Shown here: positions 26,342-54,000 of the stretch, piece by piece | Layout of the letters: each line of letters opens with the position of its first letter | Numbering within the stretch: the stretch's first letter is position 1 | Assembly (NCBI GenBank): GCA_964035545.1 | Contig: OZ037771.1 | Span: forward strand, 12,094,480-12,158,479 | Origin: Bugula neritina | Lineage: Eukaryota; Animalia; Bryozoa | Reading direction: 5' to 3' | Length of the DNA stretch: 64,000 bases | Program-made: the position numbers and the translations under genes | Notes under the pieces: model-generated | The model's input: only the letters and a program-made list of their open reading frames with translations | What the model was told of the DNA's origin: nothing | The model's database searches: none

Positions 26342-27829
26342 CTGCAGTTCAAAGACTCTCCACATATTATTCCAATACTAGCAAACGTGTTTTGATATTG
26401 ATAAGGAAAACTTTTGCATGTACTATCTGAACGCTATTAGAGCCTGAGCAAAGGAATAACTGTATGGCTCAAATCAATTTGACAACATTCTCACTAAGAT
26501 TTCGACAATAGACAACTATTTGTTGATCAAATAATACACCATTTGTTATAAAAAATATTTCATCAACAATTAAAAAACAAATAAGACTGACTTTTGATAT
26601 AATATTTTTAGCTGAACTAAGAGTTTAAAAAGTTTCTTTCTGTAAGATATGACATACAGGGTTTTGGGCTAAGGACATAGGCTTCACCTGACGTATAGTA
26701 ACTAGTATGACATTGATTACCAATTGATACCATATTGTACATCTCGTATTTTCTGATCTGCATACGTTACACGGCCAGTGCATCACACGGCTTTTACGAC
26801 TGTCAGGGTCGATCCTCATTTTGCCATTTCGCGATATTAGCCGCAATAAACAATATATTTTCGTGCGATAACATCGACTGTCTAGGGCGCTACTGTTGAC
26901 GAATCAGAACAAAGAGAGCACATGAGTGCTGTAAACATGTACGTGTTGTTATGGTTACTAATGATGATCTGCTACGTAATTTTTGTAGTAGACAACTCTC
27001 ACAGAAATCATTAATTTGTCTTTTTATTATTTAGCTAACAACTTTTGCCTAGAAAAAAGCAAAGGTAAGGTGGCTCAAGCAATCCTGTATTTTTTTAGAA
27101 TGTTTTAGCTTAAATTCTGTTTGGTTTATCCTACTAGAATGTTACCTGCTGCAGCATCAACACTATCATTGCAAAACTATATCTACTTATAACAAAATCT
27201 TGATGCACATAGCAAAATTATCTACTTTATTGTGGCGGATGTGCAAGAGTTTGGAGTCATCTCATCAATTACACATAGCAACAGAAGAACACAATATAGA
27301 AATAACAGAAAGCCAAAGACAGTATACCTTTATTTTTAACCAAAAAAGAATTTTGTTAAACATTATATTGTTTAGTTCACCATAAAAAAACTGATTTTAC
27401 AAGTGGTTACATCTTTTCCGAAAATAAAGGTGCCATGAAGCAGCCGAAAATGAAGTCGTCCGCTCACCAGACACCTAAAAAATAATTATGCAACATGATA
27501 TTTTTAAAATTAAACACAGATATGCAAAAGTCATCACCTACATAATTTTTTATAAATTTAACAAGCTTGTTTAGTGAAAGTTTATAATATAAACACTAAT
27601 GTTGATAGCGAAAATGCCATGTTCATGCAAGATAGTAAATCAATATAAATAAGGAGTCATATCATATCTATGTTATATATGTATTCAATTCTGGTTTATG
27701 CTTTATGCCTTTAACTATGAGTGCACAACCACTAATCCTATTTCTACCAACACCATCTCTACCACTAACAGTACTAACGTCAGAATCAAAAGCAACTTCA
27801 CCACTACTACTAATAATGTTATTATTTTA

Positions 27830-28290
27830 TTATTATTACTTCTACTACTACTACTGCTACTGCTACTACTACTACTGCTACTACTACTACTACTACTACT
27901 GCTACTACTACTACTACTACTACTACTGCTGCTACTGCTGCTGCTACTACTTCTACTACTGCTACTACTACTGCTACTGCTGCTGCTACTACTTCTACTA
28001 CTGCTACTACTACTGCTACTACTACTACTGCTACTACTACTTCTACTACTGCTACTACTACTACTACTGCTGCTACTACTGCTACTACTACTACTGCTAC
28101 TGCTGCTGCTGCTGCTGCTACTACTTCTACTACTGCTACTACTACTGCTGCTGCTACTACTTCTACTACTACTACTACTACTACTACTAACTAGTACTAC
28201 TACTGCTACTACTACCAGTACTGCTGCTACTACTACTTTTACCACTACTGCCGCTACCACCGCCGCCGCCACCACCACTACTAATATTGT
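27830..28290. repeat. (CTA/CTG)n trinucleotide microsatellite
   Basis: Seen directly; source of the poly-L/poly-Y/poly-S ORFs. Confidence 0.95.
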
Positions 28291-28456
28291 TTCTACTACA
28301 AGTACTGTAAATCTTACCAGCAGCAAGTTATATTGGAAACTGTTTGCTCATTTTATCATTGTATTAGTGCAATAACAAAATGTTTATATTTTAATATAGT
28401 CAAACCTTTTAAAAAACTAGGCTGCTACTTATGAACTAAGAAGTTGTGCTACCCAC

Positions 28457-29618
28457 CTTGATATGCACTCAGCTCCAACACCAAGCAGGTGGTTATGATG
28501 CTTCTCCACAATGGCCAGGCCATCCAGCTGTCCGATTGTATGCATCTACGTAAAAATTATTGGCATATGGTGCAAGAAATGATTAAAAACCAGATAGGTG
28601 TGCTAGAATTTATACAGCATAATATAGAGTAAGGTAAAAGAGAACAGACCGTCAAGTGGTACAGCATAGAAACAATTACTAGCTATTATATGCTTTATAG
28701 AAGTTGGCAAATTGTAGCCCACTAGATATGAACTTTGGTTAGCATTTTATTTTGGCTTTCAGCAACTGCTTTAATCAATAATCTTGGCAAAACCAATATG
28801 TTTACAAATTAACACCTCCACTAGATAGGTATACAGGTCAAAATATTCCAATTGGTGACATACTAAAAGAAAATGTATATTTATTCATCTTTGAAAGATT
28901 GCTAATAATTTATAAAACAGCGTCGAAATCAGTAAAGTAACAGCGCAAATAAGTTTATTAAACAGCATTATAGGATTGCCTATTACTAGTTTCATGATTT
29001 CTATTATTTTACTGGTTTTAAACATAATATAGGCTGAAAAAGCAATATTAGTTCTCTCACTTTTGCTAACTACATTGCTTGGAAGGCCATCATAATTAGA
29101 TCAGATCAAACAAATGTGTTGACAGGTAGACTGGAACAGGCCTAAAATTTGCAAGGTATAATTTAAATGTATCTGGCCTGAAATTGCTGAAACTGACAAT
29201 ACAATAATATGAGAAACGAGCAGGGTTTTTTATTAAAGCTAGCAAAAATAATTCCTCTACATATAATTAACATACAGTTCATACATATAATATATTACTA
29301 TGTCCAGGCAGCAGTGCTTGTTCTAGCCAAAAAAAAAACTGATTTAATGGCTGATTTTAATGGCCATCAAGAAATTTATGGCGCACAGTGGCATTGTCAT
29401 ATTTTTAATATTCAAAATTACAGTTCTAATCTATCAATCATTTTATCAATACTACTACACTATGATCTACTCCTGCTGCTACTGCTGCTGGTTCTACCAC
29501 TGCTACCATACTGCTGAGTAATGCAAGCTAAGTAATTTAAATTACAATTAAAAAAATTATTGGACTTTCTTTTCTATTACCTGTCCAGTTTAGCATTTCT
29601 TTCATCATAGCTTGCCAT
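28457..29618 (-). CDS. Candidate leader exons (29618-29581, 28545-28457) of the minus-strand EGF/TM paralog
   Basis: GT-AG, phase-compatible splicing gives MASYDERNAKLDR|CIQSDSWMAWPLWRSIITTCLVLELSAYQ|GVSCNYAK..., in frame with the exon at 26341. The hydrophobic stretch could be a signal peptide. Confidence 0.45.
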
Positions 29619-30136
29619 AGTAACTTGAAAATTCACAGGGTTTGAGTTAGACCTATGGAATATACTTACAAGTAGAATGAACCCACAGTTCTGCAATATA
29701 TCATGAAAACATTCAAAATAAAAATATAGGAAAACCAAGTAAATGCTTCTAAGTATTAGCGCAAGTAAAGATGCTATGCAATCTATCCAACATGCAGCCA
29801 AATGTCTCAAAATAAGCATCATGCAGAGTTATAAATATAAAATGTTTCCGAATCAAGGCTAGCAACACATTGTTGTTGTGATAGCAAATTTTGCTTAATA
29901 AAGTAAGGAAACCAGCTTCCCTTGCATGACTCAATTTCTATTAAAGAAAAATTATACTCTCATATAATCGCGAATAATTCAATGCATGTATTTTAATTCA
30001 ATTTCATAGTTATTTTTCAGTTTCTAGACATGCTGACTATTGAACCATATAGGCTACTTTAAACTAGTAAAAATACTGAGAGCAATATTAACAAAAAAAA
30101 TGTTCACAAAATGTAAAAATACAACTAAAAAATTTT

Positions 30137-30223
30137 GCGACACCCATTTTAGTCAAAACCCCCCTTATGACTAAAATATGTGTCACGGACCGCGACACCA
30201 GGTGGCCACCCATTTTAGTCACA
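30137..30223. repeat. Cluster of three CACCCATTTTAGTCA-type motifs, two forming a hairpin; probable transposon terminus
   Basis: GCGACACCCATTTTAGTCA (30137) and the inverted TGACTAAAATATGTGTCAC (~30168), plus a third direct copy (~30207). A T-run precedes the cluster. Confidence 0.55.
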
Positions 30224-32139
30224 CCCAGTTTTATTTAATAGTAAATCAATTTACTTATATAAAAATTATTACATTCACAGTGATACATTGATGGTCATAA
30301 TATTTTATATATCAATATCATCATTATGATACAATTATCACTATTACTATTAGTGTTACTATATGATAACTTATCAATAAAACTTCATAAAGTTCATGAA
30401 AAACATTAAATATAACAATTTAATTAAAACTAAATCAATGCCAAAGGGCAAGGTAGAGTCAAAATTAAATAAGCTATAGGGTGTAGGCTATAAGTGTAAG
30501 TATAATCATCACTATAAAACTAAGTGACTGATGAGTTGGTACTTGGTAGCATAAACATAAAATGAGCATCATCTCATCTCATCTCATCTAATTAATCTCA
30601 CTCGGAGCGCTTTGGCTCCTTTATCGAGATGCAGTGGTGTATGAACAATTGTTTAAATTATCAGTAGTAAGGAAGAAAACCATTTTGTCTACGAGATAAG
30701 AATATAGTTAATTATGCTTTGATTCAAAGCTCAATAGCTAGCTACTGCCAGGAGAGAAAAAAAAGAAAAAAATAAACAAACAGAAACTAAAACACCATTA
30801 CATATATGATTTATGACCCTTTGGTTTCTATTTCTGATTTTAGCTTTACCTTGTCTTTTGGCATTGGTTATAGTATTAGTTTGAGTTACAACACTATCAG
30901 TTACTATGACTATGAGTATGAGTGAGTAGCCTTGCCCGTAGAACTAGGAATAGGAGTAAATCACTAGAAGTAGAAGTGTGGGCATCGGGGTATGACTATG
31001 AGTATAACTCATAGCCATAGTATGAGTATCTTACTGAAAGTGATACTCATAAACCTCAAGTGATAATCATAATGATACTTAGCATGACATGTAAGGTGTA
31101 TAATACTCAGTCTCAGTTAATGAGTTATACAGAGTAGAATATCAAACTTTAAGTTTAACTGCTACTTTGAAGTAGGACTTAGACATCACCATTTATGGGT
31201 ATGTCATGCCGTCATAGACTATAGACATAGTATAAGGTTCTAATACTATAAGTATAACTATTACTATTAGTATTACTATTAGTGTATTACTATTATAACT
31301 TATAAGTATAAGTATAACTATAAGTCAGCTATACTGATTACGCAGATTTGTGATTACTAATTTAAAATCACTCTAATCAGTAACTGTTATCACTATTAGT
31401 GAATTATTCATCATTTTATGATTTTATCATGGTCATAGTGAAACTGATTGAGTAATACTTAGAGTTATAGCTATATTGGTAGTGATACTGCTACTGATAG
31501 ACTTAGAGTTAGAGTGTGAGTCAGAGTGAGAGTCACTGAGCTGGAATATTATTGAGTTCGATGGTGAGAGTGATATTGTGGTGGCTCGTGGAGCTACCAG
31601 CAGCACAATACGCAGGGTCGCGTAATTGACCCGGAACAATGACAGCCAATTAGCAACTTTAGTAGTTAGTAGCAGTAGTAAATTTCCCGCTGTTAGTCAG
31701 TCGAAGTTAGAGTGTTGAGTAGTCTACATGTGTGGAATTATTAAATGTATTTGTATCGTTTTTGTAATGTGTTCTTGTACTTAAAATATATAGTCGTTCA
31801 CTCGACTTATCCTGGTGAAGTTCTCTAGCAAGTAATTAGACTCTCTGGATTGCATATCAACCCTAATTCTGAAAATCATAACAATATTCATATTAATTAT
31901 AAATATGGTTGTAACTAAGAGTATGAGCAAATGTGACATTATAAGTATTACCATTACTATTAGTGCATTCGTATCAGTATTACTATTAGTATTAGTACTA
32001 CTAATTATTAATCTATTTTCCAATAATAACCATGCATATGCCCTAGCTTATAAGTTTGAGTACGCCTATGGTATTCCAAATTGAAATTGGATCATTATGA
32101 TTAATTTAAATTTAACCAAACATATTTAGTTTGTTTACT

Positions 32140-32510
32140 GTCGTTCCATACACAAGTCGTTTCGTACACAAAATGAATAATTGATTAATCCACTAGATGA
32201 CTACTTCAATGGTACTAATTTACTTATTTATTGCTTTCCAGCATATATATTGAACACCTCCCATGTCTCTTATTGATCGATGTTTTATATTATTTTTTAA
32301 TGTATTACCTATTACTATTTTGATAAATAAGGTAATAAATTTTTTTATTGAACACTTTTTGGTTTTATTTTGATCAGTGCCTCAGTGGTTTAAATTGTAA
32401 TGTGCAAGTTGCTTGTGAGCAGTACTGTTTGGCTCATAGTCTCATACATCAAATAATGAATATGTATTTCAGTCAATTCATATTAATGTGTGTACGAAAT
32501 GACCTGCACC
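32140..32510. mobile_element. ~370 bp MITE-like insertion
   Basis: GTCGTTTCGTACACA (~32156) is inverted to TGTGTACGAAATGAC (~32489). Confidence 0.55.
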
Positions 32511-34032
32511 TATTTATTTATATTAAATATTCTTATTTGATATTGTAGTTTCTTTTACAAACACAGAATTAGATAGCTTTTTAGTACTTGTAGTTTTGCT
32601 ACTATACAACTATTGTCATTATTATAGTTGTAGTAGCAAAATTATTATTATTACTGTATTATTAATATTACTAAATATTATTGTTTTTAAATTTGTACTA
32701 CTTCTACTTACTCAGTTACTGAGTGAGTCAGCAACTATAATAATAACCCTTAAAGTATTATTTTCATTACTTAGATTTATACATATACAGCTAAAATGTG
32801 AAGCTGTACAGTATGATTAAGAATTGTTAGTATAGTAAATAAGTAATTCATTGTAGTCATATTCATACTTCAATGTGATACTAATGCTGATGGTACTATT
32901 TTTTCTAATACAATAAATATATGTAAATAAGTATAATCATTTACTATAGCCAAGACATCAAAGACTCACATTTTTAATAATGATGAATTGATTTAGATCA
33001 TAATTAAGATCATCATGGTTTTAATTATTTTCATTACCATCATTATTTACATTGGTAATAATATTGCAATCTTCATTACTAGTTACGTCAATTATAATAA
33101 CTGCAAAGTACACTTTTGATTGAGAACTGTGAAAATCATTAGTGATAACAAACTACCACTGTAAGTCTGTAAGTGCTTTAGTACTAGATGTACCACAAGT
33201 ATCAATGCTTTAGGTTTTTATGGTGTTAAATACTCATTTTCTTACAGTGATTGGTATTTTATTGGTACGTGTTCTGTTACTTGTGAGTATTAGTTACAAT
33301 TCCAAATGAATAAGCTATTTTAAGTAAATACTCTTATACGGTGTGAATATTGATATGAATTATATGTTTCACATTTACAGTTACAGTTTTATTAGTATGA
33401 TATACATTTTATTAATAATAATGATCATAAAACATCATCATTAAAAGTGTAAAGTTTTACTGCACTTTTTGGGACCAGTTGCTGCTTCTGGTAACATAGG
33501 TATAGAGTTTTTTGCTCATTTACCCTAACACACTAAGGTTTGAGTTTTATCTTTATTGCAACATCCAAAAACCTTTGCCGACCTTTTTCTTACAATCAAC
33601 TATGAAACGTTGTGCGTCTATGCTTAGCTGATAAATAACTAATAATATTTGCTTGTTATATGGGGAAGAATTTTTTGCATAGTAATACCTCTCGTGTTTG
33701 TATTTTGATTTTTCTAATGTCAATATATTTAAGAAATATTCTGGAAAGCATTTTTTGCCAGTTTGTTTCTTCTCTTTATTTCTTGTTCATTTTAACCATG
33801 CAATATCAGTTATTAACTCTATAAGATACACTGTTTTAATTATTCGTTGCACTGGTGTAGCATCTAGGATCGTGTTGATTTTAAGTGGGGTGCAGACTTT
33901 TTGAAAATTATGGCTTTTGTTTTAAAACCTTTCTTATCCATACCACAAAGTTTTTTTGCTTGTTTACCGCAATGAGTCTGTACACAACTACTAACTATAA
34001 CTAAAAGATATCTGTTTGAAATATTATAGAAT

Positions 34033-41486
<7,454 letters not shown>

Positions 41487-42152
41487 AGCTTTTTTCTTGA
41501 AACCTTTTTTGATAGTTTTTGGATATATTTTTCAAGCCACTATCTATCTGAGTGAGGCTATATTTTAACTAACTCTCTTCAATAATAATTTTATGTCTAG
41601 CTTAAAAATACCTATGATTGTGCTTGCTTGCACACTGTATATGTTCGAGTTTCTTCCAGGTTGTTTTTAGTCACATGATGTACTGTCGTTGCTAATGAAA
41701 CTTGCTTATGAGTACCCAATTATCCTTTTTCCACAATACTTATTGCTGCATTTTAGTAGTTGTTTTTATATTAAAATAATTTTGAAAGTTGTAAAGCTAG
41801 TTTTTACTAATGTGTGTGTGTGACTGGCAGAATACACATAATCTGTTATCAAACATGTATTAAATGTTATTAGCGATTCCAAAGATGAGAAATTGCATAC
41901 AGTTTTCTAGTTTGTTCTGCCCTGTAATAATTTTGTAATCTAAAAAAGAACTTTTTACTCTTATAATATTTTTGTAACCATAATATGCTCTAATTCAACA
42001 TTTGAAGTAATGTTTAACACATCCTATGTTGGCTAGAATTGATTTGCAAGGTAACTTTCACCTTTGTCTTGAAAGAATATCAAACTGTTTGGCATACAAT
42101 TATTTGTTTATTTACAATATATATATATATATATAATATGAAATATTTAGGT

Positions 42153-45035
42153 TCAGGTTCTTTTGCTGCATCCTTGTCCCTAAAATACAAGAAATAATAA
42201 TAATCAACAAGGAATATGCAACTTCACCCAGTTGATATCTTTAAATCACAAATGAACAGTTACCGGTTTACTTAGTTAAGCTGCAGCATAGTATAACTAA
42301 ATGCTACTTTAATTTTAAAAGTGTCTAGTCAACTAATTGATAATGTGAACAGCTGAAGTAGTACACTTACCATAAACTGTTTGTAAAACACTGTGTGACG
42401 CACATTTGTAATTGGCTCCCAGGTTGGAGTCCTAGAATATAAACAACAACTTTTTCAAACTGGAAGACCAAAAGCACCCACCAAACTTCTGAAGTTGAAG
42501 AAAAAAAAAATCGGTCTAGATCTGTGACAAGTTACAAAGACATTCCATTGTACCTCCCTCCGTAATTTAAATTTTTGTCTAACATTTTATGTTATGACAT
42601 TGCTTACATGCAAGTTCTAATTTCTAGCAAAAAGTAAAAAAAAATGCAGTTTATAAAAAAACATGACCTAATTACACAATGCTTCCAAATAAACAGTCTT
42701 CTAGTCAAATGAATTTAACCACTAAATTTAACCACTAATTTTCAATCTTACGATAACAAATGGCATACTCAAATAAATTGGGTAAGCTATTTTACATTTT
42801 TATACCGAGCTCTATCGTCTGTGTATGCATGCATGTGTTATACTTTGCTAGTGGATCATTATGAAAGTTCAATGCAGAATTATTCATACTCCATGATCAT
42901 TCTTGCTGGTCTCAATTCAACTTACCTGTACCCCTTCCATTTAACAAGTGCTTCCCTTCCTTTAACGTTAGTAATCTTTTCAATCACCCAAAGTTTTTTG
43001 GTACCTCCTTCAACAAGAAACACATAAAACATTATATTTATATGATGATTTTATAACAGCTTTTTAAACATGGGTAAATAATGCGATTTATAAATATGTG
43101 ACATTTGCAAAGAGTTTCTGAACATTTTGTTAGACAAATTAATTCATGAAATCTTTTATACGTGTCATGCATATACTCAAAAAGCTGTGCAAACAATTAC
43201 TTCAAACTTTAATTTTCTTGATTTACAAAACCTTGTATTATATAGCATTGAGCTAATATTACAATAAATATAAAACTGATGCATCAACCACAAATTGTAA
43301 AGTATTATAACTACAATATAAATATATGCAAGTATGTAATAAGCTTTGTCTAATTTGGTTACAATTTGTGAGACAATAATTATTTTGATTTTAAATAAAG
43401 TTTGAGGATAATTATCAAAGACGTACGTTTTGTTTTTTGTGAACTCTTCTTTCTAGTAGTGGCTGAGGGCACACTGGTTGAAGGATCACTGGCCGAGGAA
43501 ACACTGGCTGAAGGAAGACAGGTTGAAAGCACACTGGTGGAGACAAAGCTGGTTGAAGGCACACTGGTTGAGGGCACACTGGTTGAGAGACCTATGGTTG
43601 AGGGCACACTGGTTGAGGGAACACTGGCCGAGGAAACACTGGTTGAGAGATCTATGGTTGAGGGAACACTGGTTGAGGGAGCACTGGTTGAGGGCACACT
43701 GGTTGAGGGAGCACTGGTTGAGGGAGCACTGGTTGAGGGAACACTGGCCGAGGAAACACTGGTTGAGGGAACTATGGTAACTGGTTTATCATCTTTGTCT
43801 AGTTTATTATAGCTTTCCATGACTGTCATCTTGTTTGGATCGTAAACTTCCTTTACTAAATACAATAAAGTAAAATTACATTCAAACTCTGCACAAATTT
43901 TTTTTAAAAAGTAATAGAAAAGTAGTTTTACAACTTTTATGGTCTATATATGATAATCAAATATTTGCATGTTTTATATCTGAAACTACATAAAGAAATG
44001 TAAATATCTTATGTAAAATGTATTTATTGGCCATAGGTTTAGTGAAAAATACGAGTAGAAAGCTTGAGTTGCCACCGTCAATAAATTATAAATAAACATA
44101 CAAAGTGCTCTATATTACATCTAGCTCTAAAAGCATGTATGCATCTTACTTGAACTTAAAAGCACTGCTGTCATAGCTTTAGTAAGTTGTCCTAAGAATT
44201 CAGATGACACTCCACTGCTTATCACTGTGACCTTCTTATTTGAGTTAGGCTTTATCATAAAAGTAACTGTACCAAAGCCAGCTCCAAGAGCGAATGATGA
44301 CTAAAATATAAAATAGTTTAAATTATTTCAACAATAATATGGACAAAAGAACAGCTATGCACTTAGTAATTAATTCTATTTGTTATTATTATAAGTAAAA
44401 TAATTTATACCGCATCAAATTATTGTTTACAGAAAGCAATTTTTACCAAAAATGGTAAATAAGCTACTGGCACAGCGTTTTAGTTATGCATGCATAGTAA
44501 AATACCTTTCTCATTTTTTGCTTAAACTGATATTATATTTAAGCATTACAATATTGCAGAAGTTAAAAGATTTTATTTGATGGCATCACACATGTATGCA
44601 GATCAACTTTGTTTTCATTTTCCTATAATTTGCTATTATTATAGCATTCTAGAGAACAAAATCGCTTACCATGTTACACATCCTCTGCCTTGTGTAGCCG
44701 TTACCTTTTTTATGTTGAGCACCATACTCAAACTGTCTAGCCAATGTCTCCTGTTTAGTTTGTAGTGTTAATGATCTCATAGAGCTCCCTAAATATATAC
44801 ACATATATATCCAATTATACATTACTTAAGATGCTTTAAATTAAACTTTTTAAGACATGTATGCAGATATAGCTTCATATGTAAAAAGAACCTGGGTATA
44901 ATTGTATACCAGACAAAATGACTTATCTAAATGCATATACTTTTCATTTGACCTGTGAACGCTGCAGTAAAATCTTTGAAGTCACAACTTTTATAGTAAA
45001 ATATTTCGTGTGTGAGTGAGTGTGTGAGTGAGTGA

Positions 45036-45079
<44 letters not shown>

Positions 45080-46909
45080 CACCAATGAAAGCAAAGTAGA
45101 ACAATTGGAAGCTCTATTACCATAAGTAATAATGTACTCACCACAGTTGGAGCAATTGACTGCATTTATTGGTATAACGTGTTTGCAGCTGGGGCATTCC
45201 CTTTTGGTAACTAAAAAACCAAGATAACAATAAACAAGTTTTAACTGCAGTATGGCCTCATGAAATTTCTGGTGAAATTGGTGCTAACTATATATAATAA
45301 CTTACCAGATGATAAATTACACTAAATCCTTTTTAAAGACCTATAAATGACTATAGGATTATGATATAAGATGGTTTTACTTGAAAATTTAATGTCTATT
45401 AATAGCTAGAGTTATAATTTTAAGTATAATATTGCAAAAAAGTTTAATTGCATGCAAGAAACATCGTTTATTTAAAGAGATCATTTATCTATAATAAACG
45501 CTTGCATAATAGCTATTATAGCATTTCTTTTCATTATATAGCACATTGAAAAGTTAAAGTGCTATACCATAATTGTCAGTGAGGATTTGAGAGCACAAAA
45601 ATACTTAGGCTATTTCAAAATTATGTTTTTAATTTCTATTGCAATTAACAAGAAACAGCAAGGAAGTGTATATGAATTATATTTCATTCTTGAGGATTTA
45701 TATAAGAATGCCCAACTATTTTATATAAGTAAATCTACTATCTCATAATTATTTTTAAATTTAGAGCCATAGATGAAATTAAACTCATATGACACGTAAA
45801 ACAAGAAACTGTACTGGTTTTGTGGTTAATGCTAAAGTAATTTGTTTTAGCATAACAAATTGTAGACATTCTATACAATCTAGATTATGATGCCTGTGCT
45901 CACATAAAACGAAAGATTGCTAAACTAATTATGTATAGCAATCCTGTTTACTTACAGAATAGTATATATAATTGACCACAAACAACTCAAGACCTATGAT
46001 CTGGAAAACTATATGCAAACAAAGAAAAAACCTCAGCCCATAACTATTATATTATATTCCATATGTTGTTGTAATCATGCAACTATACAACTATTTCAAT
46101 AGATGATACTTGGTCTACTATATATATGTTTTTTGTATATAAAATATTGTCTTAGCTTAAATTATGTTTTATTGAGAATTTTTTGCTACTTTAAATAAAT
46201 TGGAAAAATAAATGAAAAAATTAGCTACAAAAATAAAAGCTATATAGCCAAGTTTTAAAGTATGCTGGATAAAATAGCATTGATTACCTAATTAAATTAT
46301 GAGAACTCAAATTACTTATATAAGTACGAGCCGATTTGCTTGCACTTGCAGTTTGCCTGCGCGTCTGGTATAACATGGCACAAGTATAATAATGGCACTA
46401 TGGTAATTTAAGGGCACAAATAGAAAAGTGAGAAAGAATGCACACTGATGTCAAACTTGTTAAACCCCAAACTCAAACCTTCATTTCCAAACCTAAACCC
46501 CATCCCACCCCAAACCATAACATTGAAGATGTGCCATTATTTGTACCTACTTTGCCATTTGTGCCTTTATTATCAGTATTATCATTACCTGTGCCATTTT
46601 TACCTGTGTCATTTTTACTGCAAACTGTAAATAGTAGGTATTTGTTGATTGAAGCTCAAAAAGAATTTACTACACTTGAAAATAATTATTATGATATAAG
46701 CAGCATACATATATACTTGGCTTGTCTAGCATAAATTAATTTAAATTAATCAATCATAATATATAATAATCAAGTTATAAAATATCCTTTATTTTATTAT
46801 ACTTACTGCATTTGCTGCATTTTGCAGGAGGCCTAATGCTGGGTGGTTGCATAAAAGCTTCTGCACACAAATTGCAATGTGCAATTTTAATTTTTGTTGA
46901 GCTATCCAT
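42153..46909 (-). CDS. Zinc-ribbon (4x CxxC) + Ser/Thr/Pro pentapeptide repeat + C-terminal chromodomain protein; 8 exons, roughly 345 aa
   Basis: Exons ~46909-46807, 45210-45142, 44788-44670, 44300-44150, 43855-43426, 43007-42926, 42431-42371 and 42179-42153, all GT-AG and phase-compatible. CNLC..CSKC..CPSC..CSNC; (VPSTS)n; KLWVIEKITNVKGREALVKWKGY|RTPTWEPITNV is the chromodomain consensus. Confidence 0.75.
43465..43772. repeat. Coding 15-bp tandem repeat (ACACTGGTTGAGGGA-like, ~20 copies) encoding VPSTS/APSTS on the minus strand
   Basis: Seen directly; lies inside a phase-consistent exon. Confidence 0.9.
46368..46625. mobile_element. Small non-autonomous element with inverted ~15-bp sub-repeats (GTGCCATTTTTACCT), intronic
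   Basis: AATGGCAC-type motifs at left, GTGCCATT motifs at right; same family as 48490-48685. Confidence 0.6.
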
Positions 46910-47564
46910 GCGTTTTACTGTGAAATCTAAAACAATATAAATTTGCAATGAACATAGCGTTATATAAAGGTTGCAGGAATACAGACTGGCATAATTTGGA
47001 ATAGAAAAACTAAATAATACTTATATAATATAAGAATAATCATACTGATTATGAATAGATAAAAAGAACCATGATGCTTTAAAACTGGTAATTATGTGCA
47101 AAATCATACAAAAACATACAACAGTTATATTATTACATAATGTAACCATGCATGATGTATCAAAATAAAGAGTTATTTTTAATTTCTATAAAACCTCACG
47201 CGGTCATACTAATAACTAATAGTAATATGGTAAACAAAAACATAATAAATTGATGATAAATTATTTAAATATCGTGACTAGTTATGATTGATTCAAAATA
47301 TTTAAAATAAAGAATATACTTCAAAAAATTAAATAATTTCCTGATAAATTCTTAGTACCTCAGTATTGAATGCTTCAAGTGTTTCTAATCAATTACGTAT
47401 AAGCTATTCCGTTGCTGCTGATCTGGCAAATTTAGCCTAACGCAACATTGAGCCATCTCATTGGTTCAAGCATACAGCAGTGGTTTAGCTTTCTATTAGC
47501 TATAACAAACAAAAAGAGAATAAATTGTTTGCGGGTATATAATAACAAGACTTATGTGAAATAT

Positions 47565-47643
47565 TTGCCACTACTGGGAATCGAACCCGGGTCCTCAGGC
47601 TTGCAAGCAAGTGTGCTACCATTACACCACGGAGGCTACTGGG
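47565..47643 (-). mobile_element. Short tRNA-derived element family B, best-preserved copy
   Basis: Minus strand GCCTCCGTGGTGTAATGGTAGCACACTTGCTTGCAAGCCTGAGGACCCGGGTTCGATTCCCAGTAGTGGCA has intact A/B boxes but poorly paired acceptor and anticodon stems. Confidence 0.7.
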
Positions 47644-48489
47644 TTAACACAACACTACAACTTATAACAATTAAAGTTGTTACAGGTCTAGAAAATTAAC
47701 TATAACAATAATTTTGGAAAAGTTGTAAAGTCAGCAAAATCAAATTAAACTCTTTAAAAATGTTTCAAACAAACATAATGGATGCAAGAAAAAAAAGCCA
47801 ACTTTAAATTGAAAGCAAAACAAAATACTTTTCAACAAAATTTGAAGAAATGGGAAGAAAGTATCAAGTGTCCATATATATCTGCCATTCGTGCCTACTT
47901 TCTTATTTACTGCATTTCTACTTGTGCTACACCTGGTTTTATAACAATTCTTATTAGCACAGAACCACGATATCAGTAAACATTAGCAAGCCTATAAGTT
48001 ACTCATCCAATTTAATTAAGTGATGGACCTGTTTTCGAGTGCAAAGAACAAAGTGAAAAACGTAATTTGTTTTAGCACATGATGGTCAAAGTGTTATCTT
48101 TTTCAGTATTGTGGGTTTGAGTGTGCGATCAAGTTATTTCACAACGCGTATTCTAAATCAACTTCGCAAGCGTAGTTCAGATTACAATATATTTATACAA
48201 CAATACACAATCTAAAAACTACATCTATTCAAACACATTAACAACTACCCAGCACAGTGATTAAAGTTTGCATGTCTACTTGATCATAACTGTTACGCGG
48301 GAAGTCACTGTTGCTAATTATAGTTCATGATTCATATTGGCGGGTTTCTGTATCGAATCATCTTCTTAACACACTTAGTGACCCCGTCCTGCACTTGGAA
48401 GGGAATTAATATTTCCCCCTTCTTCGTTATGACAGTAGCTCCACGAGCCACCACAAAAGCTCTCGGTTACAATCCATTTTTTTTTTCAT

Positions 48490-48685
48490 TTGTAAAAATG
48501 GCTCCAGTAAAAGTGGCACATGTAATAAGAACCACCTGCATCGTATATAACTGATATAATATATACAATACAAAATACATATACAAAACCATTATTACCT
48601 GTGCCATTATTGCCTGTGTCATGTTTAGCTGTGCCATTTTTACCTTTATCATTTTTACCTCTTCCATTTTTACCTGCATGGGCAA
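48490..48685. mobile_element. Second copy of the GTGCCATTTTTACCT sub-repeat element
   Basis: GTAAAAATGGC/GTAAAAGTGGCAC at left, tandem GTGCCATT..TACCT at right. Confidence 0.6.
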
Positions 48686-50984
48686 TTTTGGTTTCATCCT
48701 ATATTGCAGATATAAGAGGCTTATCCTATGGTTGAAGCTAGACTAAATTTCCCACTTGGATTCTTCTCACCTAAAGGCTTCCAAAGTTAGACTCTGCACA
48801 TCAACTGGCGTATCGATTGCTAAATAGCTAATATGCCTATAATATAGCTATAATTATAGCTATATTAGCTAATAAATTATTTGGAATAATAGCCTACTTT
48901 TCAAGGATTTGTGTGAGGCAAAAAACCGTAATACATTATTAATAGACATTATTTTTGATGAATATTTATAAAAAAAACAACAAGATGTAGAGAATTTCAA
49001 AATTAATAAGTTGATGCAGATCAAAAAAAATTTATGTTTCAAATAGCAAACAATTGATCCAAGTTTATTTGAATATAGATTTATTTCATTAATATTCAAA
49101 CGAATTGTGCATAAAATATATGTTGCACTGAAATTAATTATTAATTAGCATCTAACTGGGATGACGCTGCCAATTTTACCTAAAGTTGTAAGAAACTATA
49201 ACAATGCATGCACACAATGTTGAAGGTTCTTGACCTTCATGATTCATAGAGTGTTTACATCAATACTAATATAATAATAATATGACAGAAGAAAGTAAGG
49301 AATCATATAACCATGCAGACATATAGATGCAAAATGTAGAATTTAGTCTACCAAACAAACTAAATTTGAGGTCAACAATAAAAAGACCATAAAACTACTG
49401 CATTTTACCACATTATATCCAATCTAAAAAGATCTACAAATAAAATGATCTTTAAAAAGCTCCATAGTAAACTTAGAACGGCATTAGCACCTGTTTCTAA
49501 TTAAAGTGTGTGGCTATTTGAATCAAATTAGTGTCTGGAAAAAGTATTTACAGCTGTAATTATAGCATAACTCATCATGGTGGGAAAAGTGTTCAATCTT
49601 TAATTGCAATCACTATATCTATGAATGCAAGTGTATCTCCTGCCAGATAGTCTGTTAGCTAGCAAGCCTGTGACTTATAGTAATGTAGACCCCTATATTA
49701 TGTGCTCATCACTGAAGTGTGAAGTGATGCACAGTGTTCACTACTTAAAAAGAAGTATACCATTTCTAGTGTATAAATCCACAATTTATATAAAATCTAA
49801 AAGTCATTGCTTTTTTATTCAGATATCATGTTTTCCTGCTAAGATATTTTACTGGTACCCCAAAAATCAATTTTTGAGGCAAAATTAGCCAAAAATGTGC
49901 AGTTTTTTCTATAACTTTGCAAAAGAATGAAAAAATACCAAAAAAGCTGCACTGAGAAAAAATAAGATTCACACCATAGTTTTTAAATTTTGATTCTAGT
50001 AGCCTTCAATTAAATAAGATTGTTTTTACTGGTACTGAATTTTTACACAGTTACAATGCAAACCCCAGCAAGGCAGTTGCAGCTAAAAAGTTACCTGTAA
50101 CTAGCCTGTGCAGACAGGTATTTCAAAGACATTTAATCAGGACTGGCCATATATAGAGACAAGACTTTTTTGAAAGTGTAACTGAGATCTCACTTTTATT
50201 GACTGTATTGTGAAAGATAAGTAGTTGAAGAATCCCTGACACACTTTACTTATGCAGTACTGAAATATTACTATGTATGTTAGTTTTCATTTACATATTG
50301 TTTTAAGGTTAGATGTCTAAACAATTTTGTTTTATAATGAATTTTGTGCGAGTATGTACTGAAATGATTTGGGATTTGTAATCGCCTTGACCTTTGACCT
50401 TTGAATGCTTGTTAGATGCTGCACTGCACAGAGATGGCTTGAAGGTTTGAACTTTCAATTTTCAGTCAAATGAAATACACAAAATAAATACTACACTTCA
50501 CTCACTAGTCAGCACTTAGTCCAGCAACTAAGGGTTATATATGTTCTAATACGAAACCAGATATTAACAGAATTGTTCAAGGCAAACAGTACTCACTGTG
50601 TACTCACAAGTGTTTCACTGATGGTTGTAAAATATAACTATACTGGTATGAGTACAGACTCTTATCACTGGCGCATCTTGTTTAAATTTGCATGTACAAT
50701 CATGAATATATTATACTTTGTATGAATATATATGTATAATTTTTTATGCACAAACATAAATCCATATATAATTATTGATTATTAAAGTAATAAAAATGAA
50801 ATGTTTCTTGTTTACCTATTTTAATTAAATGCATATATTATACACACATACACACATAAATAATATATATCTATTCAAATACGTTATGATTTTAATAAAC
50901 ATGCAAAGCCTAGCCCTCGCTTATAATTACAATACATATGGCCTGCGGATGTTTAATGAATCTTGAAAATTTATTTTAAAAACA

Positions 50985-51062
50985 AAAAAAAATGTTGTGG
51001 CCCCCAGCTCAAGCTAAAACTTGCAGACTGGCCCTCGGTCTGAAAAGGTTGGACACCCCTGC
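50985..51062. mobile_element. Single terminus of a hAT-type MITE
   Basis: TGTGGCCC...TGGCCCTC...AAAAGGTTGGACACCCCTG resembles common hAT (CAGGGG...) MITE ends; partner end not found. Confidence 0.5.
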
Positions 51063-54000
51063 TGTAAATAAATCAAAGCCCCCTGGGGGGGGGATTAGAG
51101 ATTTAGAATGCCGGGTTTAGGTTGAGGGGTTTAAGGGCTGGTGGCTTGAGTTTGGACTTTGAGTTAAATTAATGTTAATTTTTCCAAACCACCATTTAAA
51201 ACCACACACACGCACACATGCACACAAGTTAGAAAATATGTATATGTTTTTTTTCAACTATGTTTTAAACGGAATACAAACATGTAAACCACAAAACAGT
51301 GATTGTCTTCTTTCAATGCCATATTTTTGATCACACTAAGAAAGATGGTGGTAATGCAACTCCTAAAAGCATGTTGCATTATGTCGCTCCTCTGTCGGCA
51401 AGTATACCATTTGTATTAATGTATGAAGTCTTCAACATATATTTCAACTTATTTTTGCAAGTAACTCATGACAGTAAACTATATGCTTCTTTTTCTTCAT
51501 GTGTGTGTGCGTGTGAGTGTGTGTAAAAATGCAGCACTCATAATAGTTGTTATTTTCTGAACAGCTTACAATAGCTACAGTTATATGTAATTGCATAGGA
51601 GTGTTGCAAGTGTTTGCTAAAAGATGGTATGTAAAACATGCTGACGAATTTGTTGTGGAGAAATTTAAATAATTACTTAGCATTTAGCAATAAAATTGTT
51701 CATGTACAAATCAGAAACACCAAGTTGTATGCATATATTTTAAATAGTATGCATGAATTTGCAAAAAAAATGTAACTTAAACTATACCAAAGTTGTGTTT
51801 CATTAAGTTAGGAGATATTTATCAACAAAGCAAAAAATTAGAACTTTATATACTTTTACTATGAGTATAATTATGTTTTATATATGTGCTCATTTTGTAT
51901 ATACTGCAAAATATGTTATATACAATGTTAAACCAAAAGAATCAGAACTTTATAGTGTAATACAGGCACATCTACAATGTTAACAAATATAACATTAAAA
52001 ACAAGAAACAAAATTGTTCGTCTCTTCTACTTAACTTTTTACAAGCAAAAAATTATTATTGCTGCAAACTAAATTTAAATGCTGAGGTTCGTAAAGTTAT
52101 ATGTTTGTTAAATTATTTCACATTGTTTATATTCTACAAATAATTTCTACATATTATTTTCTAAACGCGATATCTTTTTTCGTCTACTACATGCAGCTCA
52201 TTATATGCATATGTATATTATACAATGCAGCATAAAATTTTATAATACTTAGCAAAAAATGCTGAAAAATATTAAAATTTTACAAGATGGTATTATATTA
52301 TGGTGGCAATAAAATTGTAATAGACTATTATTTAATGAGAAGACAATTATGTTTTTATAATGAAGATTGATAAATTTATAATATGAGCTGAAATTGAGTG
52401 AGAAGACAATTATGCTTTCAAAATACTTACAAGACTAAATTCTTATCTAATAGCTACAGTAATTAATATCCTTTGTTTGAAACAAAGTCTAAAAGGAGCG
52501 GATTTAAATAAAAATTTAGACCTGCATTTGTTAAAACTTTTCAATCAAAACTATTACATTATATTATTTTTTCTCATAACTCCTAGCTCCTAAAACCTTT
52601 CGCATAAAAAAATTAATTTAGAATGTAAAATACTGCTAGAAATTGCCATGTTAATGTCAACCCTAACTGTATCCACCACTTGTTATAGTTGTTACGATCG
52701 TTACTTAACCAATGAAGTTGAACTAGTTGTACCTTCAGCCAATCAATGACTTATTTCGATTGCGCCTCGTTAGGCGAGGGTCGTTGACGAAATCTATATA
52801 ATATAATACAAATCCCATTACCACTGATTGACCCGAAGTTCTCTACGACTTCTATAGTGGTATAGGATAATAGATATACTGAGCACTTCACGCTTCACTG
52901 AGCACGTAGGGATGAGAAGATATTGGCGCCTACATAATAATCACAGGCTAGCTAGCTGGCAGGCTGTAATGAATAGCTTGCTTTGTACTTTGTTTATGTA
53001 GCACCAATAATGGAATGTTGATAGATAACGCAGCCCTAACGAAGGTTGCTGCTTATTGGTTGTAGTTTAATCTTAGGCTAAACAATTACAAGTAGGCAAC
53101 ACGCATGCCACCCGCAGAGCAATATTATTCAAGAACCTGAACTACATTTTGAGAGAAATTTATGATATTCTTAGTGAGGATGCCCTTAACTATCCTGTGT
53201 ATTGCATGAAGTAATAAATGATTTATGAAGTAATTAACAAACCAATGTAAAAACTGTTGTTGTATATAGAACACAACATATTGATTTTCTTCAATTTCCA
53301 CATCAAATCTATATATTCAATTATATCTAACCAATGCTAATAAACTAAACATGCATGCATACAAATATTTGCATTATATGCAAGTAATATTAGCTAATTA
53401 GCAACTATACCATTTTTTTCATTATCTTTATTGCTTGCATATGTCCAAGTATTATTAAAATAAGGTTTTTATTTGCAACTTTGCACCACAAATTACATAA
53501 AATCTAAAAACTTGAGTTGTGACATAGGGCTACCTATACACAAATAGACCTTCATAAAACTCTCAATGATTTTATTCAACTCATGTATGCAAAAGTTTTG
53601 CTTTAAAACAATTCTTCTAAATCACCCTAGAGCAGGAAATTATTACAAAAACAGCTTCTCATATATAATTTTTCCCCAGATTAATTTTTTTTCCTGTATT
53701 TAAACTAACTTAGCAAGTGAAGATTGTGATATCACTCAGGTAATCACATATATATTATTCATAGCTGTAATACTTTAGCAATGAATAGATCATGTTTAAT
53801 TTCCACTCTACCTAGCAGTTTTTCAGAATTATAGAGCTATGTATATTATCGTGAAATTAGAATAGCCTAATAGTTTTACATGTGTTTATAGCTAGACAAA
53901 TTAACTTAAAAAGCTTACAATAATTAGATGATATTGGCATTCTTTTGAAGGTTATGGTGAAGCTACTGCAAAACTGGCCATTAGTTTAGCATAATATGCA

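Follow-up and report, generated by a model that had tools for sequence, protein, structure and literature searches.

The best-known transposons of the KDZ (Kyakuja-Dileera-Zisupton) superfamily are those of fungi, which carry TET/JBP genes for DNA demethylation. Here we describe a KDZ element from an animal, found in a stretch of 64,000 nucleotides (the window) on chromosome 7 of the bryozoan Bugula neritina (contig OZ037771.1, positions 12,094,480 to 12,158,479). Positions 26776-52881 of this window very probably constitute one of five near-identical 26-kb autonomous KDZ transposons that have co-mobilised a cargo gene for a zinc-ribbon/chromodomain protein, with real borders beyond the perfect 22-bp inverted repeat that a first-pass annotation had taken for its ends. 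The genome searched is the assembly tzBugNeri2.1 (GCA_964035545.1; 216,009,554 bp).

Fungal Kyakuja and Dileera elements with a TET/JBP dioxygenase gene were described by Iyer et al. 2014, as cited in PMC12730594. Target duplications of 8 bp are reported for Zisupton, Dileera and Cryptococcus KDZ1-3 (PMC12730594, PMC12810828), and Kyakuja-1_LB has CA..TG termini and no terminal repeats (PMC12730594). The 8-bp duplications and CA..TG ends of the Bugula element fit these published elements. Like the fungal KDZ elements with TET/JBP genes, it combines a KDZ transposase bearing an N-terminal CxC cluster with a second, presumably separately transcribed gene related to chromatin or the epigenome inside the element, and shares with them target duplications of 7-8 bp, CA..TG termini and weak or no terminal repeats; unlike them, it resides in an animal host, is 26 kb long and intron-rich, and has a partner gene with host paralogues. 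The fungal partner is a DNA-base-modifying enzyme, whereas the Bugula partner would, to judge from its sequence, be a protein of the histone-reader type. Zisupton of fish and Cryptococcus KDZ1-3 resemble the Bugula element in their KDZ core, 8-bp duplications, recent activity and low copy number, but are 9-11 kb long, have terminal inverted repeats of 139-241 bp and contain, as described, only a transposase (PMC12730594, PMC12810828); the Bugula element, at 26 kb, has only about 4 bp common to both ends. Our literature search found no published description of a KDZ element paired with a chromodomain gene, and the animal KDZ elements in the literature examined are described as transposase-only. 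The locus joins a very young KDZ transposon to an intact gene of the chromatin-reader type in a barely studied phylum, and offers a concrete case in which to ask whether the recruitment of epigenome-related partners by DNA transposons is a recurrent event, as well as a candidate autonomous/non-autonomous pair for functional work.

The extent of the element can be read from its sister copies. The 22-mer TTGTGGTGGCTCGTGGAGCTAC lies at 31576-31597 (+) and 48435-48456 (-) without mismatch, where shuffling predicts no occurrence, and a transposon of ~17 kb with inverted-repeat ends had been proposed from it. The 16.9-kb segment so delimited has further copies of 98-100% identity at C2:21.31 Mb, C5:3.31 Mb, C8:0.98 Mb and C8:3.60 Mb. 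Identity among these copies is still 96-100% across window positions 27000-31575 and from 48457 to about 52882, more than 4 kb outward of both 22-mers, and no target duplication is found around 31576-48456. Homology sets in abruptly at 26776, in about 30 genomic places, and ends at 52881, a right boundary common to at least 23 places. The termini, read from both ends of ten aligned copies, are 5'-CAGTG...ACTG-3' (Table 1), and between the left and right ends only CAGT and a few scattered subterminal bases are inverted-repeat-like. Perfect 8-bp target duplications, each of a different sequence, flank the element in all seven sister pairs that were readable (AATTTGAA, GACTGGAG, AAATATAC, AGTTTTAC, GGAAATAC, ATTTAAAG and CATTCGTT). 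Because the copies stay homologous past the 22-mers, stop sharply at 26776 and 52881 and carry target duplications there, we take these positions as the limits of the true mobile unit, which at 26.1 kb is well over the size first proposed. The inverted repeat is real, in that both arms are exact; it brackets no single unit, being a common dispersed repeat unrelated to these genes, with 572 genomic occurrences at up to two mismatches (283 forward, 289 reverse; 0 for the control), and its two arms here belong to separate insertions.

The five 26-kb copies lie on chromosomes 2, 5, 7 and 8 at sites that are not linked; they diverge pairwise by only 0.05-0.58%, a mark of recent amplification. Transposase and cargo gene occur together in all five, as expected of a KDZ transposon that co-mobilises a chromodomain gene tail to tail, and on this point the first-pass annotation was correct. 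One copy (C2a) has a 2.5-kb insertion, and another (C5a) has insertions of 4.8 kb and 1.16 kb. About 25 further elements have the same termini as the 26-kb form, and four of these relatives, three of them ~17 kb and one 18.5 kb long, were read from end to end. Their ends are 93-96% identical to those of the window element; all four lack the equivalent of window 34000-37160, with the N-terminal and CxC3 exons, and what remains of KDZ in them has 38-60% amino-acid identity and is broken by an in-frame stop and by deletions. None of the four has any homologue of the cargo gene. The three ~17-kb copies are mutually 99.5-99.9% identical, with 96-99% identity between them and the 18.5-kb variant. 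A Pfam scan of the genome for KDZ gave matches nowhere but in the five 26-kb copies and in a second, distant lineage. We infer that the 26-kb form is autonomous and the 17-kb form its non-autonomous dependant. Transposition would presumably proceed by cut-and-paste, with an intron-rich CxC3+KDZ DDE transposase acting on the CA...TG termini and creating 8-bp target duplications; the 26-kb form would be the only intact source of this enzyme, and would serve the roughly 25 further same-ended elements in trans.

Compared with the window, the 17-kb form is 93-96% identical at the ends and only 67-77% identical (DNA) across the KDZ exons, a mosaic that suggests either that lineages have recombined or that the cis-acting ends are strongly conserved. 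Several additional left termini belonging to this family match only window 27000-31534; they lie at C7:12244049-12244272 (86 kb past the window end), C5:4193921, C6:2324864, C3:16718669, C143:38635 and C8:1868097. With their different internal layout, these places may represent a third structural form.

Both genes of the pair are present as first annotated, and their stops, which had been put ~670 bp apart, are separated by 667 bp, tail to tail. All Pfam searches were run exon by exon or, for the cargo, with its natural homologue P0003. Of the domains predicted beforehand, KDZ scored over its cut-off, and CxC3, zinc ribbon and Chromo were sub-threshold. The KDZ profile (PF18758; cut-off 26.6 bits) gives 30.5 bits at 37253-37438, 22.7 bits at 37582-37761 and 21.1 bits at 37940-38179; CxC3 (PF18804), in a single exon, reaches 24.6 bits (E 2.3e-5), just below its gathering score of 26.6 bits. 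The short piece at 36663-36878 has no Pfam match. The motifs HIDGN, ATDVMC and GETTEQ were recognised by eye, the last of which aligns to the second KDZ lineage. The terminal exon is acidic and ends with the TAA. The exon pieces are stop-free and differ by 0-1 nt per piece across the copies, with one 3-nt gap in C5a, and on the predicted splice model the transposase is apparently intact. The element shows the PF18758 domain, a CxC-type N-terminal cysteine cluster, duplications of 7-8 bp (at its sister copies) and CA..TG termini, all of which place it in the KDZ superfamily.

A long (TA/TATG)n-like microsatellite occupies the last transposase intron (40956-41223); it differs in length between copies and is the source of apparent 130-nt inverted repeats. 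The second, distant KDZ lineage has an uninterrupted open frame of 451 residues and was found at C4:11721561-11722070, C4:11728328, C5:10985459 and C8:6196648, two copies having a retroelement-like open frame of 193 residues about 3 kb away. It was considered as a guide for the transposase exon model and proved too distant.

Two convergent genes in one DNA transposon are also the arrangement of maize MuDR (mudrA/mudrB), and drive of both genes from the terminal repeats had been suggested by analogy. MuDR belongs to a different transposase superfamily and its genes are driven from terminal repeats of ~200 bp, whereas in the Bugula element the two ATGs are 7.3 kb and 6.0 kb away from the termini and long terminal repeats are lacking; a MuDR-like layout is not supported.

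The cargo gene comprises eight exons on the minus strand (46909-46807, 45210-45142, 44788-44670, 44300-44150, 43855-43427, 43007-42926, 42431-42371 and 42179-42153), totalling 1041 nt, or 346 codons and a stop, from the ATG at 46909 to the stop ending at 42153. All junctions are canonical GT/AG with matching phases, the donor of the serine/threonine-rich exon being the least certain site. The predicted protein consists, in order, of two zinc ribbons, which are kept in the paralogues described below, a family-specific domain of ~50 residues, a serine/threonine/proline-rich linker that differs in length among copies (total gaps 15, 75 and 15 nt), and a divergent chromodomain. The family-specific middle exon has a weak match to an SLX4/BTB giant protein (E 1.7e-4) that is too thin to interpret.

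The C-terminal assignment comes from profile and single-sequence comparison with the PDB. The family profile A3 gave 48 matches at E<=1, all of them chromodomains, led by HP1 (E 2.6e-4) and including Rhino (0.002), CBX6, SUV39H1 and cpSRP43; the single cargo sequence gave 43 matches, again all chromodomains. In a HMMER alignment with HP1 (6mha), the aromatic cage columns are occupied by W (LWVIEK), W (VKWKGY) and Y (KGY), and these residues are kept in all paralogues. A search of the ESM Atlas with P0003 returned weak leads only, to zinc-ribbon and chromobox clusters (template modelling score <0.3). By its homology, which is specific to chromodomains, the C-terminal domain is best read as a divergent chromodomain.

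Table 1. Features of the Bugula neritina KDZ element (positions in the window)
Feature	Position	Strand	Basis
Complete KDZ-superfamily DNA transposon, 26.1 kb, autonomous form (by inference)	26776..52881	+	Boundaries, termini, sister-copy target duplications
Left terminus, CAGTGCATCACACGG...	26776..26815	+	
Right terminus, ...GATATACTG	52842..52881	+	
CxC3+KDZ transposase gene, multi-exon (exon model partial)	34033..41486	+	Pfam exon by exon; ATG 34033, TAA 41486
Stop-free piece with CxC3 cysteine-cluster exon	35848..36177	+	PF18804, E 2.3e-5, 24.6 bits
Piece with CPCC...HIDGN motif, putative first catalytic Asp region (by eye)	36663..36878	+	Translation
Three exon pieces, KDZ profile positions 55-205	37253..38179	+	PF18758
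Eight-exon zinc-ribbon/chromodomain gene, 346 codons	42153..46909	-	Exon map against P0003, splice sites
Two N-terminal CxxC...CxxC zinc ribbons, exons 1 and 2	45142..46909	-	DZR, Zn_ribbon_3, E 3e-5 to 6e-5, sub-threshold
Chromodomain split by a 494-bp intron	42371..43007	-	Family profile against PDB
Nested insertion A, solo-LTR-like (LTR, long terminal repeat), 307 bp, TG..CA, bears left 22-mer	31577..31883	+	Own target duplication and empty site
Nested insertion B, solo-LTR-like, 364 bp, TG..CA, bears right 22-mer	48092..48455	-	Own target duplication
Unrelated dispersed repeat, ~1.43 kb, nested copy	49647..51066	.	Right arm of transposon

The cargo is related to genes that stand alone in the host. 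Searched against 1.8 billion representative proteins, a profile (A1) built from the most distinctive cargo exon matched only five. One of these, P0003, is an annotated full-length protein of 338 residues from an older B. neritina draft (GCA_010799875.2) and can be placed on the window exon by exon. The genome searched also contains four loci that are paralogous to the cargo and keep its exon order, at C3:18.36 Mb, C3:18.51 Mb, C3:21.05 Mb and on the unplaced scaffold C298. No KDZ exons lie within 10 kb on either side of these four loci, nor were any found there by the Pfam KDZ scan. Flanked by genes for a P450 and a ZNFX1-like helicase, the locus at C3:21.05 Mb (pC3c) is collinear, at 80-90% identity, with ~20 kb of the draft contig that encodes P0003. 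An identity of 80-90% fits the known complex of cryptic species in B. neritina (PMC11480708), and we read the draft assembly as that of a sibling species. With paralogues free of KDZ sequence, one of them syntenic in the sibling species, the cargo gene belongs, on comparative sequence evidence, to an ordinary, Bugula-restricted host family in a syntenic setting, and the earlier view of it as transposon-specific does not hold.

Three of the paralogues (C3:18359494-18361402, C3:18508681-18510258 and C298:109797-111250) are young host duplicates. The ratio of nonsynonymous to synonymous divergence (dN/dS) is 0.8-0.95 between the C3:18.36 Mb copy and the C3:18.51 Mb and C298 copies, which suggests relaxed or diversifying evolution of these duplicates. 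With 94-97% identity to C3:18.51 Mb across 11 kb, C298 resembles a haplotig or segmental copy of that locus.

The transposon copy stands far from all of these. Against every host copy it shows dN 0.26, dS 1.25 and dN/dS 0.21 over 176 shared codons, and a three-taxon estimate puts about 0.17 (dN) and about 1.0 (dS) on its own branch; among themselves, the host copies have dS 0.09-0.49 and dN/dS 0.36-0.95. The host proteins carry a C-terminal tail of 77 residues that the transposon copy lacks, and protein searches of the genome found no stand-alone cargo locus closer than 64% amino-acid identity. The simplest reading would be that an old event, either a capture at the DNA level or a split, was followed by prolonged purifying selection, rather than that the gene was passively acquired a short time ago; capture at the DNA level is indicated because the cargo keeps the host intron positions. 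The element would then be carrying along an old paralogue that belongs to a Bugula-restricted host family and has been kept by selection.

What such a gene might do for the transposon can be approached by analogy. Chromoviruses (Ty3/gypsy) are likewise mobile elements that own a chromodomain, and they are the source of the idea behind a targeting hypothesis; in them, however, the chromodomain forms part of a retroelement integrase, whereas in Bugula it would reside in a separate protein of a DNA transposon. That the cargo protein reads methylated histone tails and thereby helps the element, by tethering, targeting or modulation of silencing, is possible, at not far short of an even chance. A stronger version, in which the cargo is a true accessory factor, long selected on the element, whose histone reader steers KDZ integration or blunts heterochromatic silencing, we consider rather unlikely. 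Under that version, the pair might be a histone-reader animal counterpart of the fungal KDZ elements with TET/JBP, and the Bugula genes that stand alone might descend from the cargo gene by domestication.

Several observations weigh against the account of an autonomous transposon with a maintained chromodomain gene. The window copy itself has no matching 8-bp duplication (TACACGGC on the left, 26768-26775; AGCACTTC on the right, 52882-52889). The Pfam Chromo profile (PF00385) stays below its cut-off of 25.1 bits, with 13.3 bits for the N-terminal half exon and 14.5 bits for full P0003, and an AlphaFold2 model of the chromodomain from the 11-row alignment A3 was all-helical and unusable (predicted local distance difference test score 58.6). 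In C5a, a deletion of ~29 bp removes the ATG of the cargo gene. Exon and non-exon variability in the five 26-kb copies does not differ significantly, the counts being too small to show selection. Non-autonomous relatives have amplified without carrying the cargo gene, which is thus not needed in cis. Lastly, the cargo tree is unrooted, so that part of the constraint seen in dN/dS may predate the capture, and the capture may have run in either direction.

DNA transposons are known to capture host genes, and the cargo could be an inert passenger picked up at the DNA level, as in Pack-MULE elements and transduplication. It shares with Pack-MULE cargo its paralogy to host genes: the paralogues are KDZ-free and have the same exon structure, relatives have spread without the gene, and one of the five copies has already lost the start codon. 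Pack-MULE cargo is a fragment or chimera, whereas the Bugula cargo is a whole, intact gene under apparent purifying selection. At a dS of about 1.25 from every host paralogue it still has an intact 346-codon frame, splice sites and cage residues, with dN/dS of about 0.2, and no donor-like stand-alone copy exists in the genome. A dead passenger would be expected to decay over that distance, unless the capture was very recent and the donor was later lost. We therefore regard the passenger explanation as possible but clearly short of an even chance.

The reverse direction, in which the transposon gene came first and the four stand-alone loci are its domesticated descendants, would agree with the position of the transposon copy as outgroup to all host copies, with the youth and relaxed evolution of the latter, and with the near absence of the family beyond Bugula among the 1.8 billion representative proteins. 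The tree that would give the direction is, however, unrooted; the locus pC3c is syntenic across two cryptic species, with ordinary genes on both sides; and the 77-residue tail is present in the host proteins and not in the transposon copy. Domestication from the transposon is in our judgement distinctly unlikely.

Very improbable is the proposal that the five copies are segmental duplications and not products of transposition. Some members do lie close together, for example on C9 (3.06 and 3.09 Mb) and, as an inverted pair, on C112, and the window copy is without a target duplication, but at unlinked sites on four chromosomes the boundaries agree to the base, with no relation between the flanks, and a different perfect 8-bp duplication accompanies each of seven copies. 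Segmental duplication is refuted for the family as a whole, and remains only for how the window copy obtained its present flanks. Least credible of all is a ~16.9-kb transposon ending in the 22-bp inverted repeat at 31576 and 48456: the repeat is perfect, is not expected by chance within the window and has both arms in all five copies, but it has hundreds of further genomic copies, each arm is part of a complete TG..CA unit with its own 4-bp duplication, the 17-kb sister form, collinear to the left and right of arm A, is missing that arm alone, and the high identity runs on for more than 4 kb outside both arms, with no duplication at the 16.9-kb borders.

For the preferred reading, that of a 26-kb KDZ transposon with real borders at 26776 and 52881, the 22-mers are parts of nested insertions. 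In 18 sampled copies of the 22-mer, the interior side is conserved and the exterior sequence unrelated, and each 22-mer in the window is one flank base plus the 21-bp tip of a separate insertion. Insertion A is flanked by the 4-bp target duplication ATAT (31573-31576 and 31884-31887) and insertion B by AAAG (48088-48091 and 48456-48459). An empty site for A is given by the 17-kb sister form, which is continuous from the equivalent of 31532 to 31884 with a single ATAT. The two insertions are 58% identical overall, with head and tail alike; A has many genomic copies of ~308 bp at ~94% identity, and B has dozens at 74-88% identity. Both have the TG..CA ends and a target duplication within the 4-6 bp that define solo LTRs, and they look like two independent solo-LTR-like elements. 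The 22-bp inverted repeat is no transposon end: the 22-mer marks a family of 572 copies, both arms are TG..CA units with duplications of their own, and arm A has an empty site. Two members of this family would have inserted in opposite orientations inside the transposon before its last burst. As a practical warning, nested LTRs can yield a perfect inverted repeat around the genes of a transposon.

An interpretation of the 22-mer units as similar to miniature inverted-repeat transposable elements or short interspersed nuclear elements, with a TA duplication, is ruled out by the TG..CA ends and 4-bp duplications, and neither Rfam nor ARAGORN found a tRNA-like head in them. One same-strand pair of 22-mers lies 8.4 kb apart, at C1:27734073 and 27742494.

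Other features of the element are minor. The dispersed repeat of ~1.43 kb in the right arm has at least 17 genomic copies outside KDZ elements, at 89-94% identity, and is without coding signal. Near the left end, a low-complexity tract of ~700 bp (27650-28370) differs in length between copies. The 18 bp directly left of the window copy (CTGCATACGTTACACGGC) are loosely similar to the element's own positions 3-16, and could be the remnant of an older end or of a flanking rearrangement. Between the cargo gene and insertion B, Rfam matches a tRNA at 47566-47636 (-) with 35.7 bits, above the gathering score, and ARAGORN makes no tRNA call at this position; the ~105 bp around the match recur at 93-94% identity at C6:9599474 and C4:19332212.

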